DNA of 64,000 nucleotides from Lepidodermella squamata (lineage: Eukaryota > Animalia > Gastrotricha): NCBI GenBank assembly GCA_047495785.1, contig JBLDXI010000029.1:1612001-1676000 (forward strand), read 5' to 3'. Below the pieces are notes generated by a model, which saw nothing but the letters and a program-made list of their open reading frames with translations, was not told where the DNA came from and did no database searches. Numbering within the stretch: the stretch's first letter is position 1; every line of letters begins with the position of its first letter. Positions 21,250-49,360 of this stretch are shown here, piece by piece. The position numbers and the translations under genes are program-made.

Positions 21250-22163
21250 ATGGGTGCTGGATGCTCTTTGCCGGCGCTAGTTGTGCGGCAGGTGACGTGG
21301 CGCCGCCACCCTGACCCATTTTTCAGCGTTAATGAAATATGGCTTTTACGCAGCAGTTATATTTTGATTAAACGAGATAGCGGCAATCAACGGTTTGGAT
21401 TCGATCGCGAAAAATTATTCAAACTATTTATTCGTAATTTTACAGAATTATCGATGAAATTCCCGGAGCTATGGCTGTTATCCTCGGCAAAACTTATCAG
21501 CCTGGCTCGAAAGAGGTTTGGGAAATTGAGTTAATGGCTCAAGGTAAATTTTGCAATACCTCAATTTTCGTTCATTTTAACTGTTAAAATTTTTCCAAAT
21601 TTTAAAAATTTTTGTTCGACTGAAAACTTTGCGCTAAATTTCGAAATTTTAATTTTAATTTTTTTAAATTTTCCTATATTTATACAGTAATTATTTTTTG
21701 CTTTTGATCGATTTTTACTGCTCCAAAATATCTGAATTTCATTTTTATCATGAATTTTTTTAATTATTTCAAAAATACAGGATTGATATTTCTGAGCGGA
21801 ATCGAAAGAGCCTTGCTCTTAGTCGACGAGCCCTATTTACTGACGGCATTCGTCCATCAATTGGTTCGCAATCACTCTAAACGATTCAAAATTCCTATCG
21901 ACATGCTAAAAATTGCCTTGGAGACTTTCCGAACAGCTGTCATGGTCTACCTGCAAACAAAACACCACATCCACTATGCGGATAGTGCAAATTTCGTCGA
22001 GAAATTAACCGAAAAATTAGAATCGCAAGAAATTGATTACTTCAGTGAAAAAACGTGCAAAATATGCGCGGCTTGGAGGCATTTTCTAGACACCCTGATC
22101 GGCCTAATTGTTACTAGGCTATTAACCAAATGCAAGCTGCCCTATTGTTGCGATGATTCATAA
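21250..22163 (+). CDS. Globin G3 (MGAGCS N-terminus; E7 Gln, F8 His; HxH...CKIC; apparently shortened B helix)
   Basis: MGAGCS...FSVNEIWLLRSSYILIKRDSGNQR | IIDEIPGAMAVI...ELMAQG | LIFLSGIERAL...FVHQLVRNHSKRFKI...KHHIH...CKICAAWRHFL; introns ~21392-21445 and ~21544-21780. Confidence 0.8.
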
Positions 22164-23242
22164 TAAAATATTATCCCATCAAACCGCATTTTTTCTCATC
22201 TCACAGCGTGAATAAAATGTTCACGTATTCATACTTGTTCTCATTGTATAATAGATTTTTTGTTGAGTGGTACAAAGTGATTTTTCCACGCCGAAATGTA
22301 TAAACAAATGAGATGAAACCGTTGCATCCGTGTTTTTTGCCCTCAGCAGATAACGTTATTATTTTCATAGTACATCCAGCGTATCCAGGTATACATAGAT
22401 GGAAATACCATCGCCTACCTATATTTTTCGAAAAATTTGATTTTTTTTACTACTTTTTCGAAATTTTCAGCCCAGACGTAGGATGCGAGTTTTCGCGTTG
22501 GCGTTTACGCTAAAAATCAGGCGAGATTTTCTTTTTGTCTACGATAATGACATTACAGGGCGTAAATAGGGCGTAACTCTGTCGCACGAGGTTCGATTTT
22601 TGTGCCGCCGGCCGGGATTTTCGAAAAATAAAATTAACGCTATAAAATCCACACTCGAGCCGCTCGAGTTTAATATAATTTACGCGCAATCTATCGCATT
22701 TTTTACAATAAAAAAATTGTGACTTTTCAATTTTACCACAGGCATATGTCCCAATCATTTTATAGTCCTTTTTCAGGCCTGGACAGAATAACATGTCCAT
22801 GCTTTTCATGATTCTTCATCTATCCCTCGGGGCATGAAATGATCGCTGTATTTTTTTCAAAAATTCTCGTTTTGTTTTAAAATTAATGCAAAATTTACTC
22901 TCTTGCTCTACTAGTGTGGCTGGCGTTTATTTTAGAGTCTCATCTGATGAAACGAACACTAGCGGCGCCTATTCAGAGATCGTCACTTTGCATTTTTTCC
23001 TTCCTCGCGCGCGCATCAATTTAGCGCCGCCGTTTATAGCCCAGATCCAGGCAATATTATAAGAGATACGAGTTCGCAATCATGATGATTTTTTCCCCGC
23101 TGCAATCAGTCTCTTAGGACTTTATAAAAATTCAGCCGCAATTTTTAGCCAATCAGCATATAAGTCTAGACTTTCATTTATCTATTGATGTATAGATTTC
23201 GTGGGGAATTTCTTAATGCTGAATGCTGAATGCTGAAATTCG

Positions 23243-24701
23243 ATGGGTAATTCTGCCAGAAAACCTGTTGAAGAAAACGGCTCCGCTGGCGGTGGAGATG
23301 TGAAGCAGAAAATGGCCTTATCGCTTCAACTCAGCGAAGCAAGTGCGAAGTCAATAGCTGCTGCCTCAACCTTTGAATGGTCTCAAGAGGAACTCAATAC
23401 GTTAGCCGATAGTTTCGCCTATGTTAAACAGAACTGCCACAAGGTTGCGCTCAAGGCCGTTATCAGGTAAAATTCGCGTTTTTCTAGTTTTTTCTTTGGA
23501 TTTTTTGGGTTAATTTTTTATATAGGATGGTTGATACAATGCCTGACACGGCTGGTGCGTTGGAAATCGGCACCAAAAATACTGGCGAGTCATTTGGGCT
23601 GATGAATCAAGGCCTCATTTTCCTTACAGGTAAGGTATTCTAGAAACAAGAAAGCTCCTGCAGCGTATTACCCATTTACAGTCAATGAACAGCGTTTTTT
23701 TTGACCAAAATTGCTGGAATTTTTAGGAGAGCGCTCTATTTCTTTAAAAATGAACGCATGAATTTTTTTAAAAATTTCTGATCTTAATTTATAAATATTA
23801 TTACAGATTTTAATTTTTTTCAATTCTGCTCTATACATTTTAAGAATTAAATTAATAAAAAATTCAAACATGTGAAATTTCAATTTTTTTTAAATTTTCA
23901 TGCTGTCCGCTAAGGTTGAAATTCCCCAATTTTGTTCCCCAAATTAACTGAAATCTAAGCGGAAGATTAGGAATAAATTTGCTATATTGCTGAAATCAAT
24001 GTATTCAATTGTTACTATGGTAGGATTGGAAAGCATAAAATCACACAACTTCAGTTTTCTTTATTCTTTTCGAATCAAAATTTGAATTTTACAATTTAGC
24101 AAGCATTTCATATTTAGCCTATCTAAAGCATTGCGCAATTGTCCTGAGCTAATATGTCGCGACGCAAAAAAAATATTTTTTCTAATTTTACGAATTGTTT
24201 TTATCTGGAATTGTTTATCACTCGGAAAAATTAGGCAGTTCAATTTTTTCAAAAATATTTTTGTTTTTCGTTCAAGGTATAGAAAAGTGCATCGAGCGGG
24301 CTAATGATCCTGCCAAACTGCGAGCTTATGCCAAGCATCTAAACTCGATACACAGTAAACAGCACCAGCTGAAGCTGCATCACATGGTCGGCGGGCTGAA
24401 GGCGTTCGAGGACGTCATTCTCGAGTGCATCCAAACCGGATACCAGCACAAACCGCCCCGCCGGCAAAGTTCGGCCATGACCATTCATTTGATGCAGCAA
24501 CACCCGTCTCAACGGCCGCGGCGGGTGAGCATAGTTGGCGAGCAACAGCCTTTGCAGTTACTCGGGGCCGAGCACGTGGCTATTTGTGCGATTTGCAAAG
24601 TTTGGATCAAGTTCTTCCACTTGTTATACGTGACTTTTGACCCTAAAAACGGATTGGTTAACAAGGAATTGATGGCTAATGCTGATTCAGCTCGATATTA
24701 A
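23243..24701 (+). CDS. Globin G4 (MGNS N-terminus; E7 Gln, F8 His; CAIC)
   Basis: WSQEELNTLADSFAYVKQNCHKVALKAVIR | MVDTMPDTAGAL...LMNQGLIFLTG | IEKCIERANDPAKLRAYAKHLNSIHSKQH...EHVAICAICKVWIKFF. Confidence 0.85.
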
Positions 24702-25133
24702 AATTAATTTTACACTCTACCCTCAACAATTCTTCTCCAATGACATTGTTCGAAAATAAAATGGGATTTATTCTCACTTACTCCTCATCATTTACTATTT
24801 TTGTTTCATTAGCCAACGAAGGCCTGTTTTCAAAAAAATTCTGAGATGTACCGAATTTTTTTTAATTTATTGAAGTTTTTTCAAAATTCGATTGGGAAAA
24901 TCTTACGCCGGTACCAGATTTCATTTAATTCAATACCTAAACATTAAAGACAGTATTCGAATTCTTCACCACCATCTATATTCCAACCAACGATAAATAA
25001 CCAATACTTAGGTATTATTAAGAAATATCACCTATACTGAAGTTAATTAATTCATATCTCTGTGTCTTAAAGGCAATGTTACTAAGAATTATGTAACGCA
25101 GACCACCAATAAATCGGTATCTCTCTCGTTATT

Positions 25134-25220
25134 CGGGTAAGGGTTAGGGTTAAGGTTAGGGCTGGGGTTGGGGTTGGAGTTGGGGTTAGGTTAAGGTTAG
25201 GTTAGGATTGAAGGCTGGGA
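25134..25220 (+). repeat. Degenerate telomere-like (TTAGGG/TTAGG/TTGGGG) tract; a second microsatellite (GGATATA/GGCTATA)n lies at ~25519-25561
   Basis: gggtaagggttagggttaaggttagggctggggttggggttggagttggggttaggttaaggttaggttagg. Confidence 0.7.
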
Positions 25221-26148
25221 CTTAATATTTGGGATTTGGAACTGATTGGAATAATTTGGTAATGATTTCACTAAATTCCAAATTAAATATTATATGAAAC
25301 TACAGAAAAATATATAAAATAAAGCGAAATTAAGGTTTAATAATCTTAATTAACATACTTATATTAAATCTGAGATCCGCGAAATTTGAGATTTTTAGTA
25401 GATTTTTGGGAAATTTTGAAGCTTCCCCATAGACCATAGACAAATCGGGAAATTTCCAGTTTTCTGCCGGGAAGGTCTGCGGATTCTACACTCGTGAATA
25501 AATCATTTCACTTCTGTCGGCTATAGGATATAGGATATAGGCTATAGGATAGGCGATAGGACATTCACTATCATGAATCATTGGTCGAGTCAGCTCAAAA
25601 AAAATCGAATTTCTCCATATTTATTTTGGTGAATTTTCAGCAGCAATAAACCATTCGAGGAATTTCAGCACTTCAGGTTCTAAGCATTTTTTCATATTTT
25701 TTTATACAAAAGTTGGATATACCCCTCCCTCTGCGCGACGAAGGAAAGTAATTTATACTAATTATAATGAAGTTAGGACCATTATACGAGACAAGTTATC
25801 TGCAAGTGTCTGAGGTTCAACGGAAATATGATGCTTGGCATGTGTACTCATTACCGGAAGTCTCATTCACAACAAACAAACACACTACTTTTCCGTCTAA
25901 TTCAAGGTTCCAAACCTCGAGCCCTGGTTCAAGACACGGATCGACATTTACGTTGCTCATTATTCTAAATTAATGTTGCGAACTTGCGTTGCCGCCTCGA
26001 AGCCGGGGGCGGGTGGGAAATCATGCGAGAGATCACGTTTTGAAAGGTGATCGCTCGAGTCAAAACACTGAGCATGAGCGAGAACCAAACACTTATCATA
26101 AGTTCGAGCTGTTTTACAAACATCTTATAGTTTCCTTCAGTCATTGGA

Positions 26149-26780
26149 ATGGGGTCGAATTGTTCGCAGATAACAACAAAGCTTACTGTTATCTCTGGTC
26201 CGTCAGTCATTACGCAAGAGGAGTCTCAGTTGATTCAGGAGAACTTCGAAGCCATGAATAAGCATAGCCACGAAATCGCTCTGATGTGTTACGAAAGGTA
26301 AATAACTTTTCACCATTCAAACAAATGTATCTAACTCAAGCATTCAGGATTCTAGCTGAGATACCGGAAACGGCTAACGTTTTGAAAATGGCTGGTAAAG
26401 CAGCATCTACCGAGAATGAGCTGATGAATCAAGGCCTGATTATGTTGAAAGGTTATTCATTCCAATATAGATTCGACCCCTTATCAACTTTTTTCATTTT
26501 AGGAATTGAAAAATTTGTTAAGCTCTCGAGCGATCGTTATCTTATGTTCGAAGCAGCTGGCCGGCTAACGGCGTCGCATTCCGAACGGTTCGGGTTAACT
26601 GCCCACCGAATGTCACGGGCCATTCAAGCGATTCAGGAAGTCTTCATTCAGGAGGCAATGATGCATTGCAGCCATGATGAAGAAATGACGCGAACGGCTT
26701 GGAAACGCTTTTTCCGCGAACTCAACTACATATTCAGCTCGATGGCTCGCCGAAAGCCGAGCACAGTTGCAGGGCCGTAG
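26149..26780 (+). CDS. Globin G5 (MGSNCS; E7 Gln, F8 His)
   Basis: MGSNCSQ...ITQEESQLIQENFEAMNKHSHEIALMCYER | ILAEIPETANVL...ELMNQGLIMLKG | IEKFV...AGRLTASHSERFGL...TAWKRFFRELNYIF. Confidence 0.85.
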
Positions 26781-26901
26781 TAGCGAAATCAAAATCCAGT
26801 TATTAATCCTTCAATTTCGGGATAATCCTAAAACATGTTTGATCAAGTAGCTTTTGAATAAATCATCCTTTTTGAATCAGAAGAGTTGTAGCAGTTGGGA
26901 A

Positions 26902-27557
26902 ATGGGAGGATCTTGCTCACAGAATCTTGATGTCTCGGTGACGGAGCAAGATGTGCTTCAAGATCGAGCTGAAACTTCGATCAGCAAGGATGAAGCTAAT
27001 TTGCTGGCTAACAACTTTCGGGCGTTGTCAAAAAACTCTGAAGAGATAGGACTAGCCTGCGAAGAAGTGTTCGTTCCACTTGAAATTTCTGTCTTTAATT
27101 CTCCATCCTGTTATATAAAGGCTTATTGAAAGCATGGACGATGCTGCAGCTGTTTTAGGGGCTTCAAAAGGACCAGGGGGTTCAAAATCGGCCTTAATGG
27201 GACAGGGAGTGATTCTTCTCAAAGGAATAGGTCTCCTAGTAACTCTAGCGACCGATATGACGAAACTGAAAGCGACAATTGAACGACTATCCATCAAACA
27301 TTTGGACACTTATGGACTAACTCCAGTAAAGATGGCACAGGCCCTTCAGTGTAACCTTTTCTATTACAAGTTTTAACATTTCCTGTACTAGTTTTACAGG
27401 TTTTGAGGATATCTTCATCGAGCAAGCAATCAGCTATTGCCAATCAGACCGGGAGTTGACTCACTTTGCTTGGCGCAAGCTTTTCTGGGAAGCGAAAGTC
27501 CTGTTTGTCATTCAGTCAAAACGGATGAACATTGATCGCCAAAGTGATGCATTATGA
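26902..27557 (+). CDS. Globin G6 (MGGSCS; E7 Gln, F8 His)
   Basis: ISKDEANLLANNFRALSKNSEEIGLACEEV | LIESMDDAAAVL...LMGQGVILLKGIG...IERLSIKHLDTYGL...ALQ | CFEDIFIEQA...FAWRKLFWEAK...stop 27555-27557. Confidence 0.85.
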
Positions 27558-27818
27558 CCGTTTTCCTTGTCTTAATGTCACACCCCCCATATTATACCTT
27601 AGTTTCCGGGAATTAGGCTGCTAAATTTGTTACACAGCACCTTAGATCAATAAATCTATTTGTGTTTGACGTCATTTCAAGCAATTAGTGTAATTCTTCA
27701 ATAGGTGCGATGTTCCTTTCAGCCTACAGTAGTCCATAAAGCGTTTTTCCTTGCGCAGAATGTTTACTGTAAGTGCGATTAGGAGATGAAGCCTTTCCCT
27801 ACTTTCCAAACCCACGCA

Positions 27819-28510
27819 ATGGGAAGTGTCTGCACTAAAACGGTCACCAACAGTATTCCCCGCTACGACGAACACATGGCAGCCGAGCTGAGTCACGACG
27901 AAGCAGCTTTGCTATCCGAAAGCTATCGCTTAGCCTCGAGGCATTCCATGGACATTGGTTTTCTTTGTGAACAGAAGTATATTAGAAAGCATTTATGCAA
28001 CGTTTTGTCATCTTTCATCTTTCAGACTAGTGAAGTCAATGCCAGCTGCCGCTGAGATTCTGCAAGTTAACGGCGAATCGTCGCGAACACATCGTTTTTC
28101 CCTAATGGGCCAAGGCGTAATTCTCGTGAAGGGCATCGGCTACTTCGTAAACTCTGCTCGGAACCAGGAGAAAATGATCGACCACGTGGATAGAATTGCA
28201 ACGAGACACGCTGAAAGGTTCAGTTTGTCGCCGGAACAGATGGTCGAGGCGTTAGACTGTATCGAGGACACTTTCATTGAGCAGGTCATCAAACTGATAG
28301 ATGAAGAGTTCGCGGACAGTAAGTTCTCGTTTATCAAGGTTGAAATTGTTCTCAAGAATATTATTTTTTCAAGGTACTGCCATTGCGTGGAGGAAACTGT
28401 TTAGGGATGTTAAGAATCTCTTTACCGAGCAGTCGAAAACGCTGCTGATTGTGAGACCGCAAACATCTCGCAGTATGGTCAGCAACAGCAACGGAAGCTG
28501 GAAGGAATAG
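27819..28510 (+). CDS. Globin G7 (MGSVCT; E7 Gln, F8 His)
   Basis: LSHDEAALLSESYRLASRHSMDIGFLCEQK | LVKSMPAAAEIL...LMGQGVILVKGIGYFV...VDRIATRHAERFSL...CIEDTFIEQV | ...TAIAWRKLFRDVK. Confidence 0.85.
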
Positions 28511-29115
28511 CATTTTATTATCAATTTTACCTCAATAAAACAAAATGCGAAAATATCAGTCGCTTTGTGCTCAGCTAAAGCACTTCTTTCACTCCTTTGA
28601 TTGAAACGGAGAAAATAGGATTTTGGCTCCGAAAAAGGCACCGAAAGAAGAATCCGGTTATGGCCAGCAGCCAAAATGTGATCAAGGGGCTTATGCTGCA
28701 CTGCTGATCCTTTAAGATGAAAATAAGCCGAGTAACCTGAAATAAACTTGGCGGATGTCCAAGTCAGTCAAATATGAATTGCGCCATCCGTGCTATAGGA
28801 GTGTATACCGGCATCAGTCGATCAGTGATACATTGAGCATTCGAGAAGCATTTGAAAAGCGACAAATCGTGAATCGCAATCAAATAATTATCAGGGTTTA
28901 AATTGCGTTTAAGCTTTTTAATATGTTTGCACGTATCCTCTTTTGATTTAGACTCTGCAGAACAAGTATCAGCCGGAACCTCGATGGATAATTAATATTT
29001 CTATCAGGATTACAACGGTGCCTAGTATGCTCAAACATCGCATCTGGAACGTATCGCTTTTCAGTTCAAGAGCTGAAACAATTTATTCCTTCATTCCTAT
29101 CTGTGTATTTAAAAT

Positions 29116-29912
29116 ATGGGCGGAGTTTGCTCGTCGACTGTTGATCAAATTGTCGAGATGCAGAAGGAAATGTCCTCTGTGACCAACGGATCGATCATTT
29201 CGCCAAAGGAGGCGGTCATCTTACGGGATAATTCCATGGCACTATCTCGAAATACCTCAGAAATAGCTCCTGTAATTATCAAAATGTAGTTTTTTTCATT
29301 TTCCTAACTGCTTTTTCATTGATTTTTCCTTCTCCAGAATCATTCAAAGCGACATTTCGATGATAGGAATCTTCAAAGCAGCGGGTGTGGACTCGGATAA
29401 CCCGAAAGATCTATCCAGATTAGGGAAGGCCTTCATCGCAGGTTAGCGATGCCAAAAAATTGCCAATAAAGAATTTGTCTTTTGTCATAGGATTAGGATA
29501 TTTGGCAGAGCACGCGAATGATATTCCAAGGCTGCGGGGTTATTGTGATCGATTGGCACAAAGACATAACACTAAATTCGGCTTGTCTGGCCAAATTATG
29601 AGTCGTATGGTCCACGCATCCCGCGACGCTTTCATTAACGAAGCCCTTATATGCTGCCAATCTCAAAAAGACGAAGCCAAGATTGCCTGGCTCAAATTTT
29701 TCCAGATGATCGAAGGTATTTTCGCGTCGCAGACATCCCATTTAAATTCGGTCGAGAAGCCATTGATCCCAGACAAAACAGTCACGAAGGCCGAGTTAAT
29801 CCCGCCGCAGAAATCTAATGGTTCACTACGAGAGAAATCTGTCAGCGCAGTCTCCACAATTAACCACTCATATCGCTCGCCTAATAATAATGCAATGGTT
29901 AATGTTGAATAA
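29116..29912 (+). CDS. Globin G8 (MGGVCS; E7 Leu, F8 His; C-terminal extension)
   Basis: ISPKEAVILRDNSMALSRNTSEIAPVIIK | IIQSDISMIGIF...DLSRLGKAFIAG | LGYLAEHANDIPRLRGYCDRLAQRHNTKFGL...KIAWLKFFQMI. The first two exons are missing from the ORF track. Confidence 0.8.
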
Positions 29913-30007
29913 ATTATTAGCGTGGGTCTCTTTTCTGAGAATTCTAGCACCGTCAATTTAGGACAGAAACCCTCAAATCTACTATTTATGCGATTCGAGA
30001 AAATTCT

Positions 30008-30710
30008 ATGATTCAAAACATGTTATCGAAAAGTCGAGAAATTGATGTTCCCCGGTCTAGCACCGGGGATTGTAGTCCATTCTCAGGAACACCACTTTCC
30101 TACACAAACAGCCCACCTAGTTTCGGAAACCGCCTTTCCTTGGAAGAACGGGAAATCGTTCTGTTACGGCACTCCTTCGCCGCAATGATACCACGCGCGT
30201 CTGATATCGGTCTTAAAATTGTGAAAGGGTGAGACAAATCGCTTGAAAAATGACATTTGAATCATGCAAATTCGAATCTTAGGATTTCTGAGCGAGTTCC
30301 AGAGGCACTTGACATTTTCTCAACATCTCCTAATAAAATTATCCGGAAAGGTTCGTTGCTTTCAATTTTCATCAGTAGGGTAACGATTTATTTCCGTAGG
30401 AGATAAATGGGAACTTATGTCTCATGGCAAAACCCTATTTTCCGCATTAGAGCGAGCTATACTCCGCCTAAATCGACCCGGTCCTCTTGCAGACTACATG
30501 AGAACTCTAACAGAGACGCATAAAGATCGTTACAGAGTCGTTGCTCCAATGATGGTCGTGGCGACAGAAGTTATGGAATTAGTTGTTCTCGACGAACTGG
30601 TAATAGCTCACGGCCACGACACAGAAAATGACCCGTGCGATGTTTGTCAATGCTGGCGCAAGTTTTTCGATTTGTTCCGCGGCCATCTAATGTCATCTCA
30701 AACCAAGTGA
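30008..30710 (+). CDS. Globin G9 (E7 His, F8 His; compact HGH-x6-CDVC motif)
   Basis: LEEREIVLLRHSFAAMIPRASDIGLKIVKG | ISERVPEALDIF...IRK | GDKWELMSHGKTLFSALERAI...YMRTLTETHKDRY...IAHGHDTENDPCDVCQCWRKFF. Confidence 0.85.
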
Positions 30711-30929
30711 ACGCCGCCGGAATAAGACGGCGCTAATCCCTAAAATGACTTTTTACCTCTTCTCGTGAGCTGCTGAAATTGATGATGAGAGGGAGCAGCT
30801 TTTTGCGGGATTTTACATTTTGATTGACCTGTTAAGACTATTCTATACATCCGTCTCCTCGCAACTGAACCTATTAGACGATTTTACGACCGAGAATAAA
30901 CCAAAAAAAGTCAATTTTTCACATAGATA

Positions 30930-32435
30930 ATGCATCCTAGAATAGGCTTGACCAAGTCTTGCCCGATTGCCGTGCCGAAATCCAAGACCAGTGAAATTTT
31001 CGTGCGCGTCCCAGATGGCGATGAGCTAAATGTACACAGCGCTCCGAAGAGCAGTGATGGCTTGTTAACAGTCAACGCTTTGCCTATGTGTCTCAAGGCC
31101 AAATCCTCCGATAATCATGGCGAATCGGCCTATTCAAGAAGTTACAGCGAATGTAGGGGCTCGTCGTTTCTCAATGCGGAGGCAAATCGATTTTTGGACA
31201 TTGCGAAGCAGCTGAATGGAGGGATTATGATTTCGATTAGTTCCCTCAACAATTCTATCGATGATAGCCCACCTGGAAATGAGTCGAATGGAGTGCGCTG
31301 CGACCAAGTTGACCTAATACTCGACGAAACCGAGACAGACGCTGTTTTGTCAATTTTCCGCGATGCGAAAATGAAACTTGAGGATTTAGCTAATGATAGC
31401 TTGAAAAAGTTTATTTTCTGATAAATCAACCGTTGCTAACGCTTTTTTCTCGCATAGGATGAAGTCTGACACAGTAGGCAATGGAGATGGTGAGTGGGAA
31501 CTACTAAGCCAGGACATTTCCTTCCTCGACGAAGTTTCGGGCTGTCATAAACATCCTACTCTTCGCGTCATTAGTCGTAGACGTGCTGTTCCTGGTTCGC
31601 TCGATCAAGCTTCCGGTCCGATGATCTACAAAATAGGCCATTTATCTGGCAACAAAGAAGATCTATCTTGCAAGAATTGCTATGATAAACGGAGCGAGAG
31701 CCTGCCGAATGAAAATATTGAAATACCGGAACTCAGATCATCGAGAAGATCATCCGGCAGGCCTCAGTTAGTCTCCCAGCAGTTCAGTTTCACCGAGCGA
31801 CGATCCTTAGCTCCGGAGAATTCGCTGGATGTGCTTCCACGTCAACTCAATCTACCAATGGCATTCTCAGAGAAGGAAATCTCCATCCTATGGGAAACCT
31901 TCAACTACGTAAAGCACGATGCCAGTGAAATTGGGCCGAAGGCTATTAAGAGAATCGCTGCCCTAGTTCCGGACACATTCAAGATAACTTCAGAAAATGG
32001 AGTGATTCAAGTAGGCGACGATCAATGGGGGAAAATCATGCAGCAAGGTTGGCTTGAAATCATTTCGTAACCTCCTCCTTAAATTTTTGAACATTGTCAG
32101 GTTTCACGTTTTTAAATGGAATTGAGCGATTTCTATTGCGACTCAAGCGCCCACCCGTTTTGCAGCGCTATATCAAGCAGCTGGCTGAGAGTCATGAAAA
32201 GAAATACGGCGTAGGTGTGGATAAGCTGACAAGTGCTCTGAACGTTTTCGGCACGTTGCTGATGGAGTATTTGCAAAAGAAACACTACCACGGCAGCAGT
32301 GCCGATTTTGATTTGACGATGATGAAACGCTTCACCGCTGATCACAGCCAGTGTGAAATTTGCTCGTCGTGGATAAAATTCATTGGATTTATCAGCCTTC
32401 AATTATCAGCTTGCACTAACGTGACTGAAAATTAG
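30930..32435 (+). CDS. Globin G10: long N-extension containing a vestigial half-globin, then a full globin (E7 Gln, F8 His; HYH...CEIC)
   Basis: Exons ~30930-31408, 31458-32047, 32101-32435. Full domain: FSEKEISILWETFNYVKHDASEIGPKAIKR...IMQQG|FTFLNGIERFL...YIKQLAESHEKKYGV...CEICSSWIKFI. Confidence 0.8.
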
Positions 32436-32851: not shown

Positions 32852-33008
32852 AGCGCCAAAACAACAACTATAAAGTTCGCTATGGAAAGTACGATCGACC
32901 CTTGAACGGAAGCCAAACTTACGATCAGTATGCTCGAACGTACTACATCATTACGCTGGGCTCATTCAAGTACGATCGAATGAGTCATTGAAATGGTTGT
33001 TTTGGCGC
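32852..33008. repeat. Small fold-back element
   Basis: GCGCCAAAACAAC ... GTTGTTTTGGCGC termini with internal repeated AGTACGATCG. Confidence 0.5.
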
Positions 33009-33647: not shown

Positions 33648-34785
33648 ATGTCAAAATTGGTAAGTAGGATTATTTCCCCGGCTTTAATTTGATATTGAGA
33701 AGTAATAATATTATCCTCTCCGGGGTGTGTTAAATTGATTTCCGTCTCATCCCACTTGCATCAGCGATGAATAATAATTGTCCTTAAACACTGCAAAACA
33801 GACCCCAGGGAGCAGCGAGGCGGAACCGCCGTCACGTTATTATCAGCAGAATCGGCAACGTCGGTCGTCTCATTCACATTTCTCAATTGGAATGAACATC
33901 GTCCGCAGGTTTAGCTCTTCCCTTCTGCCAGATCGCGCTGGCAATCACCGCGACTCGAGCGATAGTTTTACGATAAATGAAACAATCGCCGAGAAGCCGC
34001 TATCTCACAGCCTGGTTTCTACCACCCTGAGTTACGAAGGCCTCCTCCAGCAGAAGAATCTGGCCGTTCTACGGCGGAAAAGCAGTGGCGCGATGCCGAA
34101 CACCCCAACGTCTGATTTCAGCCTAGCGGGTAGTTCGGAATGCTGCACGGATGAGGATGATAACGACATGTTTCTCGACCTAATTCTGTCCAATGACGAA
34201 GTTCACCTGATTAAGGAAACGTTTCGCGAGGTTAAAGATCGGCGCGATGAAGTTGCACTATGTGGCGTTCAATGGTAAGTTTCAGGTCACATGCGTTTTG
34301 CTCTCAAATAGGAAATGTTTTTGTATGTCAATAGTGTTGCCGCCAGGATGCCACAGACGTTTCGTAAACTGCATATCAACCCGTCAACAGTGAGTCATCA
34401 TGAACTCATGCCATGCGACACCTGGGAGTTGCAGCAGTGCGGCGTCAACTACCTCAGCCTAATCGAGCGATGCATTCTCCGCCTTAACCGACCGCATCGA
34501 TTGAAAACGTACCTACTTGAGGCGAGTGTTGAGGAAGAGATGAATAACTCGGTCACATCCAGTGAATTCGCCCTGATAATCGCGTCGTTTGAAGAGGCGC
34601 TGATCACATTTTTCCGGGGTAGGAACCATAATATGGAGAAGTGCATCGAGGAAACGACCTTCTCCATGGAGACAGTTTCATCCTCATCAGGTTCGGATTC
34701 TACAACTGACAGTGAGATGATCGTTGCCGTCTGGACTAAATTCTTCCGTCTAATCTATTTCGCTCTATCGCTTAAAAGTAATTAA
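33648..34785 (+). CDS. Globin-fold protein G11 lacking the proximal His (F8 Glu; E7 Cys), with long Ser-rich N-extension
   Basis: Micro-exon MSKL (33648-33659) splices in frame to 33802. LSNDEVHLIKETFREVKDRRDEVALCGVQ | VAARMPQTF...WELQQCGVNYLSLIERCILRLNRPHRLKTYLLEASVEEE...VAVWTKFFRLI. Confidence 0.75.
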
Positions 34786-35150: not shown

Positions 35151-36120
35151 ATGGGGAAAGCGATTTCAACGATGAGCATTTCGGACCGAGACGGCTTTTT
35201 CGTTGCACGACATCACGATCACGGCATTGTAGCCGTTCAACACCACCTTAAAGCGAATCAAAGCGATTATGATATCGAGCGAAGGAGGAGGTCTATTCAG
35301 GTCGTGACGGCTTATGCGGAGAACAGTAGGAACCAGCGGAGATACACAGCTACAAGCGGCGATAAGCCTAGTGGCAGACCTGGGTCGAGACTTTTCTTAT
35401 CCACAAGTATTACGCCAAGCCCTGAAGAGATTGGAATACTTCAGAAAAGTATGGAACGGTGCAAAAAGCAAAGAGAAAGAATCGCGAATCGAGCAATTGC
35501 TGGGTGAGATTCTGTTCCAACTTTTAAAGAAGTAATTGCTATTTTTTCCAAAATTTTCCAGCTTCATACGGAATATGCCAGATGCGCCTGAGATGTTGGC
35601 TAGAGCAGCTAAAGCTGGAAATCGCAGGCTGGACCCTGCTGAGCTTACCCGTCGTGGGTTGATGATGTTTTCCGGGATAGAAAGATGTGTCTACGCCCTC
35701 GATAATTTGGACAAATTGCAGTCAATGGTCGCAGATTTCGCGGATCTCCACGCCCGCCATCAAGTCCCGGTTGAAGCAATCTCAATAGTCGCTGATCTAC
35801 TTGAGACGGAAATTCTCTTCGCCGTCAGAGGAATGCATGGTAAGAGCTGCCGGTTGATCTATCGCAAGACGACGCTTGACTCACTGGCTACTGCGGCGAT
35901 TTCGAACATCAGCATCGGACTGAAAGCTGCGTCTGTTAACAATTTGATCGACGAAAAGGCGACCGAGCATTTGACGGCGCGGCACCTGACGCCGCACAAT
36001 GACTGCATGGTTTGCAATGCTTGGCGTAAATTGTTCGACATTATTAACATTGTCATGATATCGCAGATGCTTTCCACGACTAAACTTGTAGCAGCTAAGA
36101 CGCTTTCTGCTGCTACCTAG
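35151..36120 (+). CDS. Globin G12 (MGKAIS; E7 Arg, F8 His; H..C...H..CMVC)
   Basis: PSPEEIGILQKSMERCKKQRERIANRAIAG | FIRNMPDAPEML...ELTRRGLMMFSGIERCV...VADFADLHARHQV...GMHGKSC...PHNDCMVCNAWRKLF. Confidence 0.85.
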
Positions 36121-39620: not shown

Positions 39621-42080
39621 GATCTATCCACCTTAATTTACTGGGGTAATTTTTCCTTGTAAAATGATCGAACTGATCGATGGCTATCTTCCTAGTTTCT
39701 GGCGGTTTGTACCTCCTGATGTGAGATGGTTACAAGTTCTCTATTTTGGGTTTGCCGCTTTCAAATTATTAAAACGGAGAGATTTCATAAACCCTGGACC
39801 TGTTTTCTATCTGGAACATGCAATAAAAATTGCGCTTCAAACCTTTTTCACCTTTCCCTTGTGACTTCATCTTGAGCAAAACTTTATTTGAAATTTGTGG
39901 AACCATGGGTTGTAACGTGGTATACGATTTCTAGCTTTCAAGATATCTGAAAGACTGGTACCAAGACATGGGAAAATCGAGAAGGCTGGGTTGCAATTTT
40001 AGCTTTTAGGTAGTCTCATAAAATGTTCTGCATCATCCACCGTATAAATTGGAAATAAGTTTCAAGTTTGAATTTTCTCGTCAAAATGTTGATTAAGAAA
40101 AAATGAAAATGATACAATGTTCTCTCGACTCTCGACGCTTGAATTCGTGTTTAGTTTTTCAGCGATTTTACAGGAGACTATTGGCGATATTTTACTAAAA
40201 GTTGCGTGTGCTGTGTGCTCGCGGTAATATGAATCAGGAATTCATTACTACAAAATTTAGAACTCATTTTTCGCGCGCACGTTTATCTTCTAAAATGAAG
40301 AAGAAATGCGGTAAAAAAAGTTTAACTGTGTGAGTGCGCGCGCCTAAAAACAGCCCGTGTGCTCTCAAATCTGCGCGCTGCAAGTCGAAAGGTGTATTAA
40401 ATGCGCGAGGTTGTGCGCGCGCTGCAAAAAAGCCCACACAAACACACACGCGCGCGCACTAACAAAAAGATTTATTCCCGCAATTTATTCCCCACTTCAT
40501 CCGTGGTCATGCTCAAGCATGCAACCTAGCCCAACCTTTCACGCTGAATCCGAATATCTTATCATTTTGTGAAATTAGTCTTGATTTTCTTTCATAATGA
40601 AAAAGGTTAGAATTTCTCCCAATTTCAAATATTCTATGGCCTTGTTGTAAGCTTGCTGTTGGACTCAGGAGAGCAATTTGTAGCAGTCAGTTGTTATAAA
40701 ACATGAATGTTCACCTCGCAGCTTGTTACTGGCAACTATATTGTGAATTGATTGAGACGCTAATACAGTGCTCCGCAAACCTTTTTCACCTCTGGCATTT
40801 TTGGCGGCCGAAAAGCCTTGCTTCGGCCGCAGTAACGAACAGGCCCTTCTCCGGTCGCACCGACATTGGCAATGTCCTTTCATCGGCCGCAAATTTTGTT
40901 TTTGCAAGCAACTTTTTTCCATGACCAATTTTCTTTCGCTTAGTTCTATGCGCTTAGTGAAGGCGGTAATTTACAGAGGCCTCAAGAGCGAACTTCAACC
41001 GCCTAAACCGACGTTTTGCCACAACTTGAGTCATCAGAAGCGAGCAAAAGAGGTTGCTTTTATTCGCGAGCAAAGCGAGCTTGAGCTAACGGTATTTCAC
41101 AGGAATATTTGCTGAGAATAGTCTAAAATAGACTGATTCGTCATGATCGAAGGAAACGGGTTAGCCAGCCGCATTCCAGCCATCATTCGAGAAAAGCTTC
41201 CCGGCCGCGATGAACTGCCCTGCCGACCTTCGAAAAAGGCTTCGAAAAAGGGGGTTGTAAACGGGACGTGCTACAATTGCGAGCATGCGACTTTATCGTT
41301 TCAAAGCAAGTTTTCAAGTGTTAAAATTGAGTAAAAATAAAAATAAATTTTTAATTTTTGAACTAAAGCCAACAGCTTTTCATCAAAATCGAGAACTTCA
41401 TCGTTCGATTGCGAGTTGAAATTTAGGTATTGAAATTTTAAAATGTTAGTTTTCTTCAAATCATGAATGATAGGAAATCGACAGTTACTTCGGCAATTTT
41501 CGTTGCTGAACTTCTCTCACTCGGCTATGTTTCGCCATTTTCTATCAAACATGCCCATCAAATGCCTCAGAAATGGAATTTCAAAAATTACGCGCAATTA
41601 TTTTTAAATCCGATTTTCAAAAATTGAATTAAAAATTAGGTCCGGGTAGCTATTGCGAGTACGAGGCCTTACTTTATTTTTTCAAAGGCCTTAAAAGGGG
41701 GGTTTGTAAACGGGCGGAAATAACGGTTATTTGAAGCTATTAGGTACGGAATATACGGTAATTGTGGTAAGCGCTTCTACACTCGCATCTCGCATCGCAA
41801 GCAAGGATGCTCAATAGAATTTAAAAGAATTCGTAGTAATTCAATGGTTTTGTCGAAATTAAAAATGATGGGGAAACGCGATGAAAACCGCAACGCCGCC
41901 TTATAGTATGGATACATACAGCAGCAATCAGCGTAAATCGCGTGGTTTTCTCCTATCATATCAGACGTAAGGTACGTATAACGTATAATAAAGCGCTGTG
42001 CTGCGCACACACGAGTTCTATCATAGGTAATTGCGTTTACCGTGAAATTCGAGTATTAGCCAATTTGGCGCGTTTGTCAT

Positions 42081-42395
42081 TAAATATCTTTTTAAATACG
42101 AGGGTGATGTAGTTATTTTTTCAGAATTCTGAATGGTTACGGTCTGTTTCAACTGGTTGATAAAAAATTGCTGCGTTTCACTGGCTGGTTTTTTCTTGAA
42201 AGGAGATTTTGTAGGAAAATATAGACTTTTGGCCAGATTTACGGGGTTTTCAATTAATATCTTTTTAATTTCGAGGATTATATAACTATTTTCTTCAGAA
42301 TTTTGAATGGTTGGGGCCTAGTTCAACTGGTTTACAAAGAATTTCTAGATTTTACAGGCTGGCATTTTCTTAAAACGAGAGTTTATAGGAAAATG
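42081..42395 (+). repeat. Diverged tandem duplication, ~174-bp period
   Basis: Both units contain aatatcttttta...cgagg...ttcagaatt(c/t)tgaatggtt...ttcaactggtt...ggctgg...taggaaaat. Confidence 0.7.
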
Positions 42396-44155
42396 TTGAT
42401 TGTACGCGATGTTCGAATTCGTCTTTCAGCTGCCAGTTTATTAATATTTCGTCTTTGAATAAAAATTCACTGTATGGAAAAGGTGACATGCACTGAAGAG
42501 AACAATCGACGAGAAAATGACATAGTTTTAACCTATGGTTCATGTTCCTCGGCGAATTAAGACAGTAAAGCGAGATTTTCAGTGTTCAAGTTGGAATCGG
42601 TGTAGCTAAGGGATTTCGTGGATGACTACTACATTTTTCCACTGAATATCAGTGCCAAGGACCTGTCAAATGGAACTAACGGTTGATCATTAACAATTGC
42701 TGGCTATATTATTCCGAATGAATAGAAATTGCTGTCGAATGTGAAAAAATGTATCCTGTTTTATAGAATTATGTGGCGATTGTAAATAATCTAGCCACAA
42801 GAATTTCTTTATCACCCAACATAATCAACCGTTTGGCCCTCGACTTCGATTCTAAGCGGAAAAATTTCATCATCATCCACGAAATTAAAATATTACACCG
42901 ATTCATTGCTTATCACTGTCAAACTTGAATTTCAATTAATTTTTTAGGAGGAGAATTGGTCATCGATTGGAACAATATCATATTAACGTAAATTGGTCCC
43001 TGCAGTGCCTCTCATTCTTCAAACAAGAGTGAATTTTCATCTTATGATGAAATACCAATTTATCGGCTGCTTAACGACGGACAAGAGCATCAAGCCAAGT
43101 CAGGTTTTCCCTCAAAAAACTGGTTTTCTGAAAAAACCAGCCGGCAGAAAATGAGCGAATCTCAGGCCGACTTTTAATGAAGGGCTAAGGCATAAGATTG
43201 TCTGACAACATATTAGCATCATCCACGAAAATCTAAAAAAATTTCAATGAAACCAAACCAAATTCGTTAGGGCTCGAAGTAAAAAAGTGGTACGGTAGTA
43301 CTCTTATGTGTGCGTAGTATATTCATAAACAGAACGCGCGCTTTGGCGCAGCGCATAATAGCATAAATGTTAGCGCGCGCTATAATACAATGAAATGTAT
43401 GGTCAATCGAAAGCAGTTATTATGCCGCAATGCCGATATATCAACGACATGGACTAACTTCAATTTCTTCAATCCGGAACTAATCCGGAAAATGCAGTTA
43501 ACATTGCAAGATTTCTATGTCAGCTATTCTCCAATATTCGGAAGTGAGAAAAAGTGACATGGGGCATAAATGAAGTAAGATTTTTCCGAAAACTGAGTGG
43601 CCACATAAGTGTCTGTAGTGCCCAACATGAAGTTTACGTCGTCTAATGCGGAAATTTATCGTTAGTCGCGTATGTTTTTTTCCGGGCTAAGATTTTGCAC
43701 GTCTGCCTAGATCCAGATTTGACGTTAAAAGTGTCTGTATGTTCGAATTTTGAAGGGCAAAAACCAATTTGATAGAGAAATTTATGGCGTAAGGAGTTAG
43801 TACATGTTCATTTTTCAAAGTTATGCAGAACTGATTATTAGGCCAAGGAACATCGTTCATTTGTTAACAAGGAAAATGAAAATTCTACTTTAGCTACACG
43901 TTCACATCGTACTGATTGATGTTCCGATTAAGCTCAAAAATTGCTGTTGATAATTACGTCATTCTTCCTCGTTCCGAACACTCATGCAGAAGATACTTGT
44001 AGGCGTTGACCTTAGTCTTGCTCATATCTTTTGCTTACCTACTAAATTAGCCCTAATTGGGCAGCAGAGGATGTTTCAGTGTCTAGATTTCCAACTCGCA
44101 TTCAAGTCTTATTAGTTTGTATTCTATCCTGAAAGACTATCTCATTTTCGACAGA

Positions 44156-45041
44156 ATGGGCTTGGTTGGCTCGGTTTTCCGTGATCGAGAGCGTAGCAGT
44201 GACATTCAAAAGCGGAGAATTCTCGCCGATCGCCAAGTCAGAAGCGCATTTGTCGCCCTGGAATACGCGAATCGCTTTCAAATCAACAGCGGCTACAAGG
44301 AAAAGCCACATCTTTTCATTTCCTCCCGACTGACCCCGACTCCAGAGGAAATCGACGTAATTCGACGAAGTTTCGAACGGATTAAGGGGCAGTCTGAGAA
44401 GATCTCATTGAATGTCATTCGAGGGTATGGAAAATCGATTTTACAACTTTTTAAATGTTTAGCTTTTGTTTACAGGCTTGTAATGCGTATGCCTCAAGCG
44501 AGTGCGATTTTTAGCACCCACGACCCCGCCGGCATTAAACGAGGTGAAACCTTGCGATTTGTCACTCGAGGCTACGTCATGCTCCACGGGCTGGAGCACT
44601 GCATACGGAATCTGGAGAATTTGGACCAGCTGCAGGTGAAAATAGCAGCGTTCGCGGAAACTCATGTCAGGTACAAAGTTCCAATCGAGTCGGTGCCTAT
44701 CGTTGCAGACAACTTTGAAACTGAAATTTTAATCGCATGTCGGGGACTGCACGATAAAACCTGCGCGCTGACATCCGCCAGCAATGCAAGAGCTAAGACT
44801 TGCGATGGAAACGGACACTCGGCATGGAAAATAAACAAGGCCGGCTTGAATCACAGCTCCACGTGCACTGAACAATTTGACGACCATTCAGTTTGCGTTT
44901 TGTGGTAAGCCTTGATTTGCTCATTTCAATTGCATTTACATCATGATTCATTACAGCACGGCATGGAGGAAATTCTTCGATCTCGTTAATATCGTCATGA
45001 TTTCGGAAATGCTCTGTCAGGTTAATGATCAGTCGCATTGA
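44156..45041 (+). CDS. Globin G13 (MGLVGS; E7 Arg, F8 His; H..C...H..CVLC); close paralogue of G12
   Basis: PTPEEIDVIRRSFERIKGQSEKISLNVIRG | LVMRMPQASAIF...FVTRGYVMLHGLEHCI...IAAFAETHVRYKV...GLHDKTC...DHSVCVLC | TAWRKFFDLVNIVMISEM. The last intron splits the second Cys codon. Confidence 0.85.
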
Positions 45042-45192
45042 CCGTGGCTTTCACAGATAATTAGCTTGTGGAGTGAATAACAGCTGATCTACAATCTTGT
45101 AATATTTTTATTCTTAAACCTGGATTACTGCACTTCAACAAAATTGAAAAACGAAGTAAAGTAGGATATATCATATAGATTAATGGCGGTTT

Positions 45193-46579
45193 TTAGGTCG
45201 CGGTTATACGCTTTATCCAATCTAAGACCGAGCAAACGCGTACGAAACTGATGATTTGATACTCGAAGATTTTTGTAAATTCACGCGACCAGACACCTTC
45301 TAAAGTGAAAGCGTTGTCTTTATAGCAGGTAAGCGGACTTCCGCCGATCTCAGCAGAACCAGGTATCCAGTTGAAACCAGTCACCCGGGCGCAAACCATG
45401 TTCGGATGAATTTTGCCGGGCAGTGACGCGTTGTAGTGCTCCTGGCATTCGTCAGGCTGTATAAGATTCACGGCAGCTTTTCGCGTCTTAATCGACCCGG
45501 TCATGAAGCCTGTATTAGTGAACCCGGTGTTGGTTATGATGGATTGATCGCTTGTCATGCATGGGTCTTCGCACGATGCTGGCAGGCATATCGGCTGAAT
45601 ATTCCATGAATCGAAAGTTATAGGACGTGGGACAGTCGCATTCCCTATAATCGAAAAATCATTAATCTCCTTTAAGATTAAAAATTATAAATCTCTTGGC
45701 AATGAGTCAATTTAATGATGAAATCGATTTTCTCGAGGATATCGAAAAATAAGGCGCTTACTTGATATTTTAACTAGACAGAAGTCGTAGCCCATCCTAG
45801 TTGCATGCGACAGTGGATGGATTACAATTTCGGAAGAAGTCGACATGAAGGAGACTTTGACACCAAATTTGTCGTTCATAAAACCACTCGTCCATCCTCC
45901 AACGATAGTCAGCGCCTTCGGAGCCAATGCGACGCAACAATTCGCAGAAGTCAAGACCCAATCAGCATTCACAAGTGCCCCACCACATGCTGTTGATTGG
46001 TTGAAAAAATGCCGTCCGGATAGCCAGACCTGCGCCATGAGAGTAACCTATGTAATTTGCCTTAAGGCAGCTGTTTGTGATCGAGCATGCACGTTATTCC
46101 TTACCTGCCACGGGAATTCGTGATTTTCTGTCGCAACGTAGCCTGCATCTGTCAGAACACCGAAATTTCCTATTACATCAGTGCTGTTGCTTCGGATATC
46201 ATTTCGACTCCATAAAATACTACGGCCACATTTTCCTTGTACACTAGGAGGGACTGGTATCCTATCTGTGATGAAATATAATGTTAAGGATTAAAAATAT
46301 TTTTAGAATTTAACCATGAAATGCAATCGCAGAGTTGCCTGGAGGTGGAAGGGTGATGTTGTCGATCGCTTCAGCTTGTTCCCTCGACTTGCTTGTAGCT
46401 CTCCTTGTAGAACTAGGAGCTAAATAGTCGCCGTAAGTTATCGAAGGGTTGAGAGTATGGAGTAAACTTGGCATCGAAGGCTCGGGCGTAACCCGAACAT
46501 TGGCAAAGCACGCCGATGTCAACGATTTGCGGCTGACGATGTGGAAAAGCGATATAAGAACGAAAGCAAAGTTGGCCAT
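45193..46579 (-). CDS. Secreted trypsin-family (S1) serine protease homologue, predicted catalytically inactive
   Basis: Signal peptide MANFAFVLISLFHIVS; HEFPWQ; CGGALVNADWVLTSANCC (His->Asn); YDFCLVKI; NIQPICLP; MVCA; PGSAEIGGSPLTC (GDSGGP lost); FVRVCSVLDWI. Confidence 0.85.
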
Positions 46580-47448
46580 TTTTCAGCCGCTAATTATCAA
46601 ATATTTCGCATTCGTAAAAATGGCCGGCATGTTGTAGGTTAAACACGACGCGGTGTAAATTGCGCGACTTGGTTACATATAAATTTTCTTGTGTTGTTGT
46701 TATCGTCCCAACAAGCATTTCATCTTTCATCTTTCATCCGGCTCTCAATTTCACGTAAATAACTGCGCTGCTGATCGTTGTTGTAGCATTTATTAGTGAG
46801 TGACTTAGCGACTCGATACTCTCGCCGGTGAAACAGCTGTTTCATGAAAAATGCCAGCGACTCGCGCAAGTGTGTGTGTTGTAATTATTAACAGGTCGCG
46901 CGACGCCGGGCGCGGCCTGGTTTAATGCGCGCTGGTAAATAAATAACGGCGTGTTTACATAGCGACCACTGAGCTATGCGGTTTCGGCACAATTACTAGC
47001 AAAACCTAATTTTAAGTTGCCCTACATTAACCAAGCCACACCGCTGTACGCAGGCACTATTTTTCATTTTGAGAACGCTCGACCGTGGATAGTCGATTTT
47101 GATAATAGAAATGCACTCATGTGAGGGAAATAAATTTGTTTTACTCATCGCTTCCGGGGACGTATTTTTTGAAGAAAAAATTGATCGTAGTGTAATGAAA
47201 GTGTTAACGAATTTTGCGTCAGTGAACCAAAATATTGATCGCGCATGAATCTTCTTCAGGCTTTTAATCCGCGTAAGTAAGTGTACATCATTTCTTTTTG
47301 CCAAGCAATTAAACGCGCCTGTTTTTGGACAATTAAGTCCAATTTACCTTATGCTGGCAGATGCCAATCATCATAATTGCAAAACTTCGTTATTTATGTG
47401 TTTTACTCTTCGGTTTCCTGGTTTATTGATTCTGGACAGCGTAAAAGG

Positions 47449-47675
47449 TGCGAATGGTCAGAAAAAGTCGCAGGAGGCGTAGGGCATTGCTGGAATGCAC
47501 ACAGTTTTAATGAGGAGTTTCGAGAAATTGGAGAATTTCAGGAATTGCTCCAACATTGAACGTCGCCGATGTCGCACTTCTTCAAGCTCCTCAGTTTCTC
47601 GCAACTCCTTATTAAAGTGGCGCGCATTCCATCAACGTACTACGCCACCCCCGCTGCTTTTTCTGACCGTCGCAA
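47449..47675. repeat. Imperfect palindrome / MITE-like fold-back (~225 bp)
   Basis: ggtcagaaaaag...ggcgtag...tggaatgc...taatgaggagtttcgagaaa pairs with tttctcgcaactccttatta...gcattcca...ctacgcc...ctttttctgacc. Confidence 0.7.
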
Positions 47676-48408
47676 TGCGTATTTCATGACTTTTCCAAAG
47701 AATAATTAGGGCGCGTCCCAGGACTCACTGTGAAGAATTTAACGATGTTAATTAGTGAGGGACTCTATCGCCTATTTTGATTCTTAGTTTGGGCCAACGG
47801 GATGAAATATCACACGAATATATGATTTTTAGTATTCCTGTACAAATTCAGTCCAAATGTACCTCCCCGCACCTTTACCACGCCTTTTATCAATCATTCG
47901 TCGTTTGATTATCCAAAGCATCAACATATATAAATTATGCATAGCTCTTTCATAAATGCCACTTTTCACTTGTCGTCGTCAAGTTTTGATTTAATTAGGC
48001 GAGCGAAGACGTATAAGACGAAAATCTGACAAAAGCGCAAGTATATAACCGATTACGCTCAGTAAAGTCCCGAACGAGACAAAAAAGACATGAGTGGCTC
48101 ATTCTTAAAGAAGCACGCAAATGCTGAACGAGCGCGTTTCGTGTGCGTGTAGTAGAACTATAATAAATTGCGCGAATTAGATAATGCAAAATACACGCGC
48201 GATCAACTAATCTTCTAGCGGACGGAATAATCTCTCTTATCGCGCTGTGCCTCGTTGATCGATTTTGAATCCACAATTCAGCCGTCTGTAATACTTTTGT
48301 AGGCTTAATGCTCGGATTACTCGATTGCGAATTTTACAAACAAAATACGATCTTAGCTTATTTCTCAATGGCTGTAACTTCAGTGCATCAAGTCGATTAA
48401 AGGAGAAA

Positions 48409-49360
48409 ATGGGTCAAAGTGCGTTGACAGGTGACCGTAGACGCTTGAATGATGGTCAAGAAGGCCCGAAGAGTGATGAACCTAAACGGCGGTTAACCGA
48501 CGCCACCGCAGAACTAACTATTCGAAAAACACGAACATTTGACAGGATTTCTACTCTGAACGATCAATCAGCCAAAGATGCACATCTGTGCACGTTCACG
48601 ATCCAGCCGCCATGTACAGTTCTTCACTCAGCTGGTCATTCAGACGCATCGCTAGCTGACGATGGCTATGATGAAGACGAGGAAAGCCTAGCCCCAGAGT
48701 CTGAATGGCTCATAAGCGCCGAAGATAGATCAGTCATTCAGAAGACGTTCGACAACGTGAAAATAGCGAGAGAATACATCGGCTGGAAAGGAATGCAAGG
48801 GTAGAAATTTGTTTGTTCTTATACTCTCTGATCATTTAATTTCTAGGATTTTCGAAACATTTCCCGACGTAGCGCACAGTTTTCGAACATCTCCCCATAC
48901 GCCGATCAAGAAAGGGTAAAAGTGAATTATTTTTAAAATAATTAATAATTCGTCCTTCTTTTTCTCCACAGTGACAACTGGGAGCTAATGGTAAATTGTC
49001 TGACCTATTTTCGGGATTTTTCATTGTCTTTATCTACAGGGTCAGGGTATGACGTTCCTCTCAGGCATCGAGCGTTTCCTGAAACGTATAGGAAGACCAC
49101 GTGGGTTCAGAAGTTATGCCGCCGCGTTGGCGCAATCCCATCGGAAGTACTCTGTGTCTCCACACTACATGTTGACAGCGCTGGAAATATTCCAAAGCGT
49201 CATAGTCACGCATCTTACCAGCCGCGAATCGCAAATTGAGGGCGAAAAAATTCGTGCGTCATGGACACATTTTTTCGATGTGCTACGTAATGAACTCGCC
49301 TCGGCCTCAAACGCAGTAGCGACTAACGAGCAGCTTTGTCCTTACTACTCGAGTGAATGA
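48409..49360 (+). CDS. Globin G14 (MGQS; E7 Gln, F8 His; includes a 20-nt micro-exon)
   Basis: ISAEDRSVIQKTFDNVKIAREYIGWKGMQG | IFETFPDVAHSF...IKK | GDNWELM (48971-48990) | GQGMTFLSGIERFL...YAAALAQSHRKYSV...RASWTHFFDVL. Confidence 0.85.

Follow-up and report, generated by a model that had tools for sequence, protein, structure and literature searches.

A tandem globin gene array with predicted N-terminal acylation signals in the gastrotrich Lepidodermella squamata

The globin array and its gene models

The genome of the gastrotrich Lepidodermella squamata includes, on contig JBLDXI010000029.1 (positions 1,612,001 to 1,676,000), a 64-kb stretch of DNA, here called the window, that carries a tandem array of globin genes, nine of which begin with Met-Gly, a start that can signal N-terminal fatty acylation. 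All coordinates given below are counted from the first nucleotide of the window. The original prediction, made from this DNA, had claimed 14 globins and nine Met-Gly starts; a six-frame scan of the whole window with a local globin profile built from the E-to-H exons matched exactly 14 loci and none elsewhere, and the nine starts are all present, on the + strand, at the ATG codons assigned to them. The 14-gene array (G1 to G14), which lies entirely on the + strand between 16.7 and 49.4 kb, comprises the only globin loci of the window.

Exon models were built for all 14 genes from the sequence, and every modelled intron is of the GT..AG type, mostly 46-72 nt and typically about 50 nt long. The spliced models were used for the alignment, the motif tests and the tree, and single exons or database proteins served as queries in the database, family and fold searches. 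Five genes share the layout M-G-x-x-C-[ST], that is, Gly2, Cys5 and Ser or Thr at residue 6: G3 (21250..22163, MGAGCS), G5 (26149..26780, MGSNCS, 176 residues in three exons), G6 (26902..27557, MGGSCS, 184 residues in three exons), G7 (27819..28510, MGSVCT, 195 residues) and G8 (29116..29912, MGGVCSS, 231 residues). The other four Met-Gly genes have no such Cys: G4 (23243..24701, three exons) starts MGNSARK, with Arg6; G12 (35151..36120) starts MGKAIS, with Lys3 and Ser6, and has an 88-residue extension ahead of the globin domain; G13 (44156..45041) starts MGLVGS and has a basic extension of 60 residues; and G14 (48409..49360, four exons) starts MGQSALT, with Leu6. The extensions of G12 and G13 each have a net charge of +6, that of G4 is neutral and that of G14 is acidic.

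The five genes that lack Met-Gly are G1 (16763..18716, three exons, MFLFIT), with a pre-A extension of 148 residues; G2 (19337..20733, two exons, MNGMRA); G9 (30008..30710, MIQNML), with a Ser-rich extension of 42 residues; G10 (30930..32435), with an N-terminal region of about 295 residues; and G11 (33648..34785), whose probable start is a 12-nt micro-exon (33648-33659, encoding MSKL). This micro-exon reads ATG TCA AAA TTG followed by GTAAGT, and is probably spliced in phase to 33802. Part of the N-terminal region of G10 looks like the first half of a globin, with a stretch resembling helix A and the motif GEWELLSQ..FL, and a similar stretch is found in the orthologue of a related animal described below. 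A decayed half-globin was considered for this part of G10 (30930-31560), and the family hidden Markov model did not support it (E 0.2-0.7).

The assignment of the array to the globins was examined by several means. A family profile of the E-to-H exons, run against all Protein Data Bank sequences, retrieved globins only (best E 5e-7), with the proximal His aligned. Pfam Globin (PF00042) was the best match for eight of the ten single exons or read-through open reading frames (ORFs) scanned, at 13-20 bits against a cut-off of 22. The proximal His (F8), a nearly invariant column, is present in 13 of the 14 members; the member that lacks it, G11, also has a Cys at the distal (E7) position. The AlphaFold2 model of P0020, an intronless orthologue from the related animal, is an all-helical globin fold with a mean predicted local distance difference test score of 89; its residues 1-5 are coil, the first 20 are modelled with low confidence, and the A helix starts at residue 28. 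The best Foldseek matches of this model are all globins (haemoglobins, cytoglobin, neuroglobin and myoglobin), with target-normalised template modelling scores of 0.61-0.76. As judged from these profile matches and the structural model, the 14 products of the array are very divergent haem globins of the 3-on-3 globin superfamily.

The divergence of these proteins is evident from the database searches. In a word-index protein search, exon 2 of G12 gave zero matches, and alignment A2 retrieved two proteins of the related animal and no named relative. An exhaustive HMMER search gave 67 matches, and the ten close ones that were looked up are all metagenome proteins of the European Nucleotide Archive. 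The named matches among those looked up are remote, or were scored by summing many domains: they are multi-domain globins from snails, from a sea urchin and from a sea star, a protein of a dinoflagellate, a bacterial one whose name marks it as a chemotaxis receptor, and a Lottia globin with a single domain. In a feature search of the ESM Atlas, P0020 came nearest to nematode globin clusters, a result that is a lead and not an alignment.

Expression of part of the array is indicated by run X1, one small sequencing run kept as short contigs, which has the character of RNA: the introns predicted for G5 (26452-26502) and G6 (27351-27399) and both introns of G9 are missing from its contigs, the exon 2/3 splice of G8 is visible as a loose end, and G10 is covered at 31124-31900. 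On this evidence, G5 to G10 are transcribed. The genes are tightly spaced, with the AATAAA of G5 (26857-26862) 40 nt before the ATG of G6 and 96 nt from the stop of G8 to the ATG of G9. This spacing looks operon-like, and several ATGs lie closely 3' of a TTTCAG-type acceptor, so that trans-splicing is possible.

The genome is a compact one, and the remaining genes of the window encode ankyrin-repeat, immunoglobulin, sushi, SLC6-transporter and trypsin-like proteins and a reverse transcriptase of a long interspersed nuclear element. The trypsin-like gene lies on the minus strand between G13 and G14 (45193-46579), and it has SANC in place of the catalytic-His motif AAHC, so it may encode an inactive protease. 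Between G4 and G5 there is a degenerate tract of TTAGGG-like, telomere-type repeats (25135-25215).

The Met-Gly tips and their conservation

The fit of the tips to acylation signals was judged by a pattern rule and by precedents. The rule was the PROSITE N-myristoylation pattern PS00008, G-{EDRKHPFYW}-x(2)-[STAGCN]-{P}. Acylation signatures had been ascribed to all nine tips, with those of G4 and G14 as the weaker ones; six of the nine (G3, G5-G8 and G13) match the pattern, and G4 (Arg6), G12 (Lys3) and G14 (Leu6) do not. About a dozen human N-myristoyltransferase substrates that start Gly-Lys, including ARF6 and the hippocalcin family, are documented as myristoylated on Gly (PMC7048800); the exclusion of Lys3 by PS00008 is therefore too strict, and the MGKAIS of G12 fits the Gly-Lys class by its sequence. 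The Cys5 of G3 and G5-G8 is likely, from its place in the tip, to be a palmitoylation site. The other mark proposed in the original prediction, a Ser-rich extension on the members that lack Met-Gly, does not separate the two groups: Ser makes up 7-21% of the extensions in these members and 4-20% in the Met-Gly ones, and as a feature it is real for G9 and G11.

As a background, all 1619 ATGs of the window with seven open codons after them were collected. Gly follows in 3.5% of these, and 0.8% fit PS00008. The binomial tail is about 1e-10 for at least nine Met-Gly starts among 14 genes, and about 1e-5 for at least five among ten when recent paralogues are collapsed. The pattern combined with a Cys at residues 3-6 occurs at five of the 1619 ATGs; the same signature is found on five globin starts, those of G3 and G5-G8, and the five background ATGs should be these very starts.

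One of these five genes, G3, does not have an intact frame in the assembly. Where the conserved first intron would be expected, and in its phase, it carries an 11-nt remnant (TAATTTTACAG, 21435-21445) that shifts the frame, which is open only when these 11 nt are skipped. An alternative splice that joins the AG at 21445 to a cryptic GT near 21394 (an intron of about 52 nt) would also leave the frame open, but it would delete most of helix B. G3 is either a recent pseudogene that arose by a deletion inside the intron, a gene that uses a cryptic donor, or an assembly error.

The conservation of the tips was followed in the related animal mentioned above, which is known from metagenome contigs and whose globins were the only close relatives found in the exhaustive HMMER search; one gene copy is represented by three samples (L001, L002 and L003). 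Orthologue pairs between the window and this relative are 33-48% identical, and in the tree the pairs placed there (G1, G10, G14 and G6/7) are separated by over one substitution per site. In five of five Met-Gly orthologue groups the relative has Met-Gly as well. Its orthologue of G4 starts MGNSSNK, which fits PS00008, that of G6/7 starts MGASCS and is intronless, those of G12/13 start MGKSSST and MGTNLSS, and that of G14 starts MGQASS and is likewise intronless, with a further paralogue that starts MGQSVAK. The four groups that lack Met-Gly in the window (G1, G2, G10 and G11) lack it in both species (4/4); in the relative, G1, with MF at its start in the window, begins MFGRLH, G2 begins MPSEIF and G10 begins MTSKLP. 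In the Met-Gly groups, Gly2 is kept in the relative together with Ser, Asn or Ala at residue 6, or with Cys5, while the remainder of the N-terminal extension is unalignable. Because these residues persist while the rest of the extension has been scrambled, the sequence comparison supports selection that keeps the Met-Gly tip.

The order of the genes also matches between the two species: in the relative, ankyrin genes adjoin G1-G2, and G13 is followed by a trypsin-like gene and G14. The globin genes of the relative (L001, L004, L005, L008 and L010) are mostly intronless, whereas those of the window have 1-3 introns of about 50 nt; therefore, intron content changed greatly between the lineages. 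A second G6/7-like copy of the relative (L001 6300-6330, and also in L002 and L003) reads ACG GGT GCA ACT TGT TCT, that is (T)GATCSS, with ACG in place of ATG in all three samples, and the next Met downstream opens MGGLST in L002 and MDGLST in L001. This copy could use non-AUG initiation, or its start could be in the course of being relocated. The start of G1 in the window (MFLFITPKASLL...) is only mildly hydrophobic, and its orthologue in the relative (L004 4482-5462) has at its start a hydrophobic sequence (MFGRLHLMKWILSVPLFFSSFL...) resembling a signal peptide or a membrane anchor. The non-acylated G1 might use a different kind of membrane anchor.

At a shorter evolutionary distance, run X2, a DNA run that is about 3% divergent from the window and whose differences are listed in full for 25950-27073, has a single, synonymous change in the tip of G5 (26157) and none in codons 1-6 of G6, and it carries an in-frame insertion of 3 nt a few codons past the tip. 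In the tree, Met-Gly is found in the G5-G8 clade, in the G14 clade, in G12/G13, in G4 and in G3, on both sides of the midpoint root, and a minimum of three state changes explains the pattern; the backbone is poorly resolved, and the midpoint root serves for drawing only. This distribution fits an acylated ancestor with a few losses, as read from the sequence tree.

A predicted membrane tether and its alternatives

Taken with the precedents in other animals, the tips make it probable that most members of the array are fatty-acylated, membrane-tethered globins. From the sequences, the gene models, the globin fold and the conservation of the tips, all of which are observed, we infer the following enzymatic steps and membrane location. 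The eight intact members (G4-G8 and G12-G14), and the apparently broken G3, would be translated from the ATG directly before the Gly codon; methionine aminopeptidase would remove Met1, and N-myristoyltransferase would place myristate on Gly2 co-translationally. In G5-G8, and in G3 if it is expressed, the weak membrane contact of the myristoyl group would let a DHHC palmitoyltransferase acylate Cys5, and the two lipids would form a stable anchor that holds the globin on the membrane, with 20-27 residues of flexible pre-A sequence as the linker. For G12 and G13, without the Cys, the net basic extension could add a second, electrostatic and reversible membrane contact. G4 and G14 keep Gly2 but have an unfavourable residue 6 in this species, which makes their modification doubtful.

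The proposed steps presuppose that the Met-Gly tips are true N-termini, which they very probably are. No upstream in-frame ATG precedes the tips of G4-G6, G8 and G12-G14. An in-frame stop lies 6 nt upstream of Met-Gly in G8 and 9 nt upstream in G4, with no AG in between. A contig of run X1 that reaches 29106 matches the genome colinearly across the upstream stop of G8, the one gene whose start has RNA support. In the orthologues of G4, G6/7, G12/13 and G14 in the relative, Met-Gly is the first ATG of the ORF, and an in-frame stop is found 2-36 codons upstream, the shortest distance being that of the G14 orthologue. The original prediction had named a Gly that is not residue 2 as the outcome that would undo it; the evidence from first ATGs and stops speaks against such an outcome in G4, G8 and the orthologues of the relative, and the upstream ATGs of G3 and G7 would allow it in these two genes.

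Several points weigh against tethering of most of the array. In-frame ATGs are found 17 codons upstream of the tip in G3 (21199) and 11 codons upstream in G7 (27786), and would bury the Gly if they were included in the mRNA; the AG of the TAG upstream of G12 could in principle be a splice acceptor; and the RNA evidence consists of the short contigs of X1, which are without 5' ends and without cover on exon 1 of G5. Residue 6 is poor in G4 and G14, the Lys3 of G12 fails PROSITE, and G3 is frame-broken. By sequence, the claim that most members are tethered would thus lean on three weak members (G4, G14 and, by PROSITE, G12), on the broken G3 and on G7 with its upstream ATG.

One alternative is that some or all of the starts are misassigned, with translation from an upstream ATG or from an upstream or trans-spliced exon, so that the Gly is internal and never meets N-myristoyltransferase. 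Besides the upstream ATGs of G3 and G7 and the inability of X1 to define 5' ends, this alternative can draw on the micro-exon at which G11 apparently starts, an indication that tiny 5' exons occur in the array, and on the AG dinucleotides in the interval from the upstream stop to the ATG of G5, G6, G13 and G14. We consider it unlikely: in G4 and G8 no acceptor separates the upstream stop from the ATG, the X1 contig at G8 is colinear with the genome across that stop, and the mostly intronless orthologues of the relative have Met-Gly at their first ATG. A buried Gly would also leave unexplained why Gly2, Cys5 and Ser6 are conserved at this exact spot.

It is also conceivable that Met-Gly was inherited and has no function, through phylogenetic inertia or start-codon context, and that these are ordinary soluble globins. 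The nine Met-Gly genes are paralogues and hence not independent, as few as three state changes account for them on the tree, and residue 6 of G4 and G14 has moved away from the consensus. We nevertheless regard this explanation as quite improbable. Although the extensions can otherwise no longer be aligned between the window and the relative, each Met-Gly group has retained Gly2 and a small residue 6 (or Cys5). A general Kozak preference does not explain Met-Gly, given that G is found at +4 in none of the five genes without it. Furthermore, the only tips in the 64 kb that combine PS00008 with a Cys sit on globins.

An unmyristoylated N-terminal glycine can be a degron. A Gly that serves turnover in this manner, or another N-terminal modification, in place of a stable lipid anchor, would suit G4 and G14, which retain Gly2 without a good residue 6, but is very unlikely for the array, because Cys5 has been conserved along with Ser/Thr6 in G5-G8 and in the orthologue of these genes in the relative, a classic dual-acylation layout that a degron does not need, and because the experimental precedent in globins favours acylation.

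If the tips are lipidated, as we think probable, most of the array would be at membranes and would not consist of soluble oxygen carriers, which would point to local redox or superoxide signalling or to lipid protection, as shown for GLB-12 of Caenorhabditis elegans and proposed for globin X; this downstream role is borrowed by analogy from these other globins. The array would also be an independent and unusually dense example for ancestral membrane attachment of animal globins, and with anchored and unanchored paralogues side by side at one locus it allows a direct comparison. A broader and more tentative reading, which we hold to be somewhat less probable than its negation, is that of a large, lineage-specific globin radiation from a membrane-anchored ancestor, with three inherited anchoring classes: Gly2 with Cys5 and a dual lipid, Gly2 with a basic linker, and no lipid signal with long extensions. 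These classes would be shared by two species whose divergence exceeds one substitution per site, and their members would be specialised by the strength of attachment and by compartment. If this reading is true, the array would be a natural test bed for the idea of Blank and Burmester that animal globins began as membrane-bound redox proteins.

Comparison with known acylated proteins

Lipid anchors have been described in globins of several animals. In C. elegans, both Gly2 and Cys6 of GLB-12 are needed for plasma-membrane binding and for function, and binding is lost on mutating either residue (PMC4686822); GLB-26 of the same species is N-myristoylated (PMC3520999). According to two reports, globin X of zebrafish is bound to the membrane by myristoylation and S-palmitoylation (PMC3176823; PMC7457136). 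The latter also describes acylation motifs as widespread in arthropod globins and cites Blank and Burmester (2012) for their wide occurrence, and perhaps ancestral status, in the globins of animals (PMC7457136). The analogy to membrane-bound globin X and to the acylated nematode globins that accompanied the original prediction is an apt one, and for GLB-12 the two residues have been validated by experiment (PMC4686822).

GLB-12 and GLB-26 resemble the tethered candidates of the array in having a short extension before helix A, Gly2 and a nearby Cys, which is Cys6 in GLB-12 and Cys5 in G5-G8. They differ in that no sequence orthology to GLB-12 was detected, the word-index search being without a named relative and HMMER returning remote named globins only, and in that the motif is found here on most members of a single tandem array that is known from its sequence. 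The likeness to globin X and to the globin X-like proteins of invertebrates extends to a remote family-profile match, the Lottia globin, which starts MGCTIS. In descriptions of globin X the palmitoylated residue is usually Cys3 ('3C-palmitoylation') and not Cys5, and the two are likened here by motif. Many members of the array also have an insert in the GH loop and a CxxC motif, which do not appear for globin X in the descriptions consulted.

The array adds new members to an already known kind of globin, the motif and its meaning in globins having been described before, and it opens no new question. Outside the globins, the nearest counterpart of the tips is found in the Src-family kinases, which are anchored by the same two-signal lipid logic. 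The SH4-type start of Lck, which we take to be MGCVCSS, is nearly identical to the heptapeptide MGGVCSS of G8, and in both a myristate would be followed by a palmitate on the neighbouring Cys; Lck belongs to an unrelated protein family, and the resemblance is limited to the lipidation signal.

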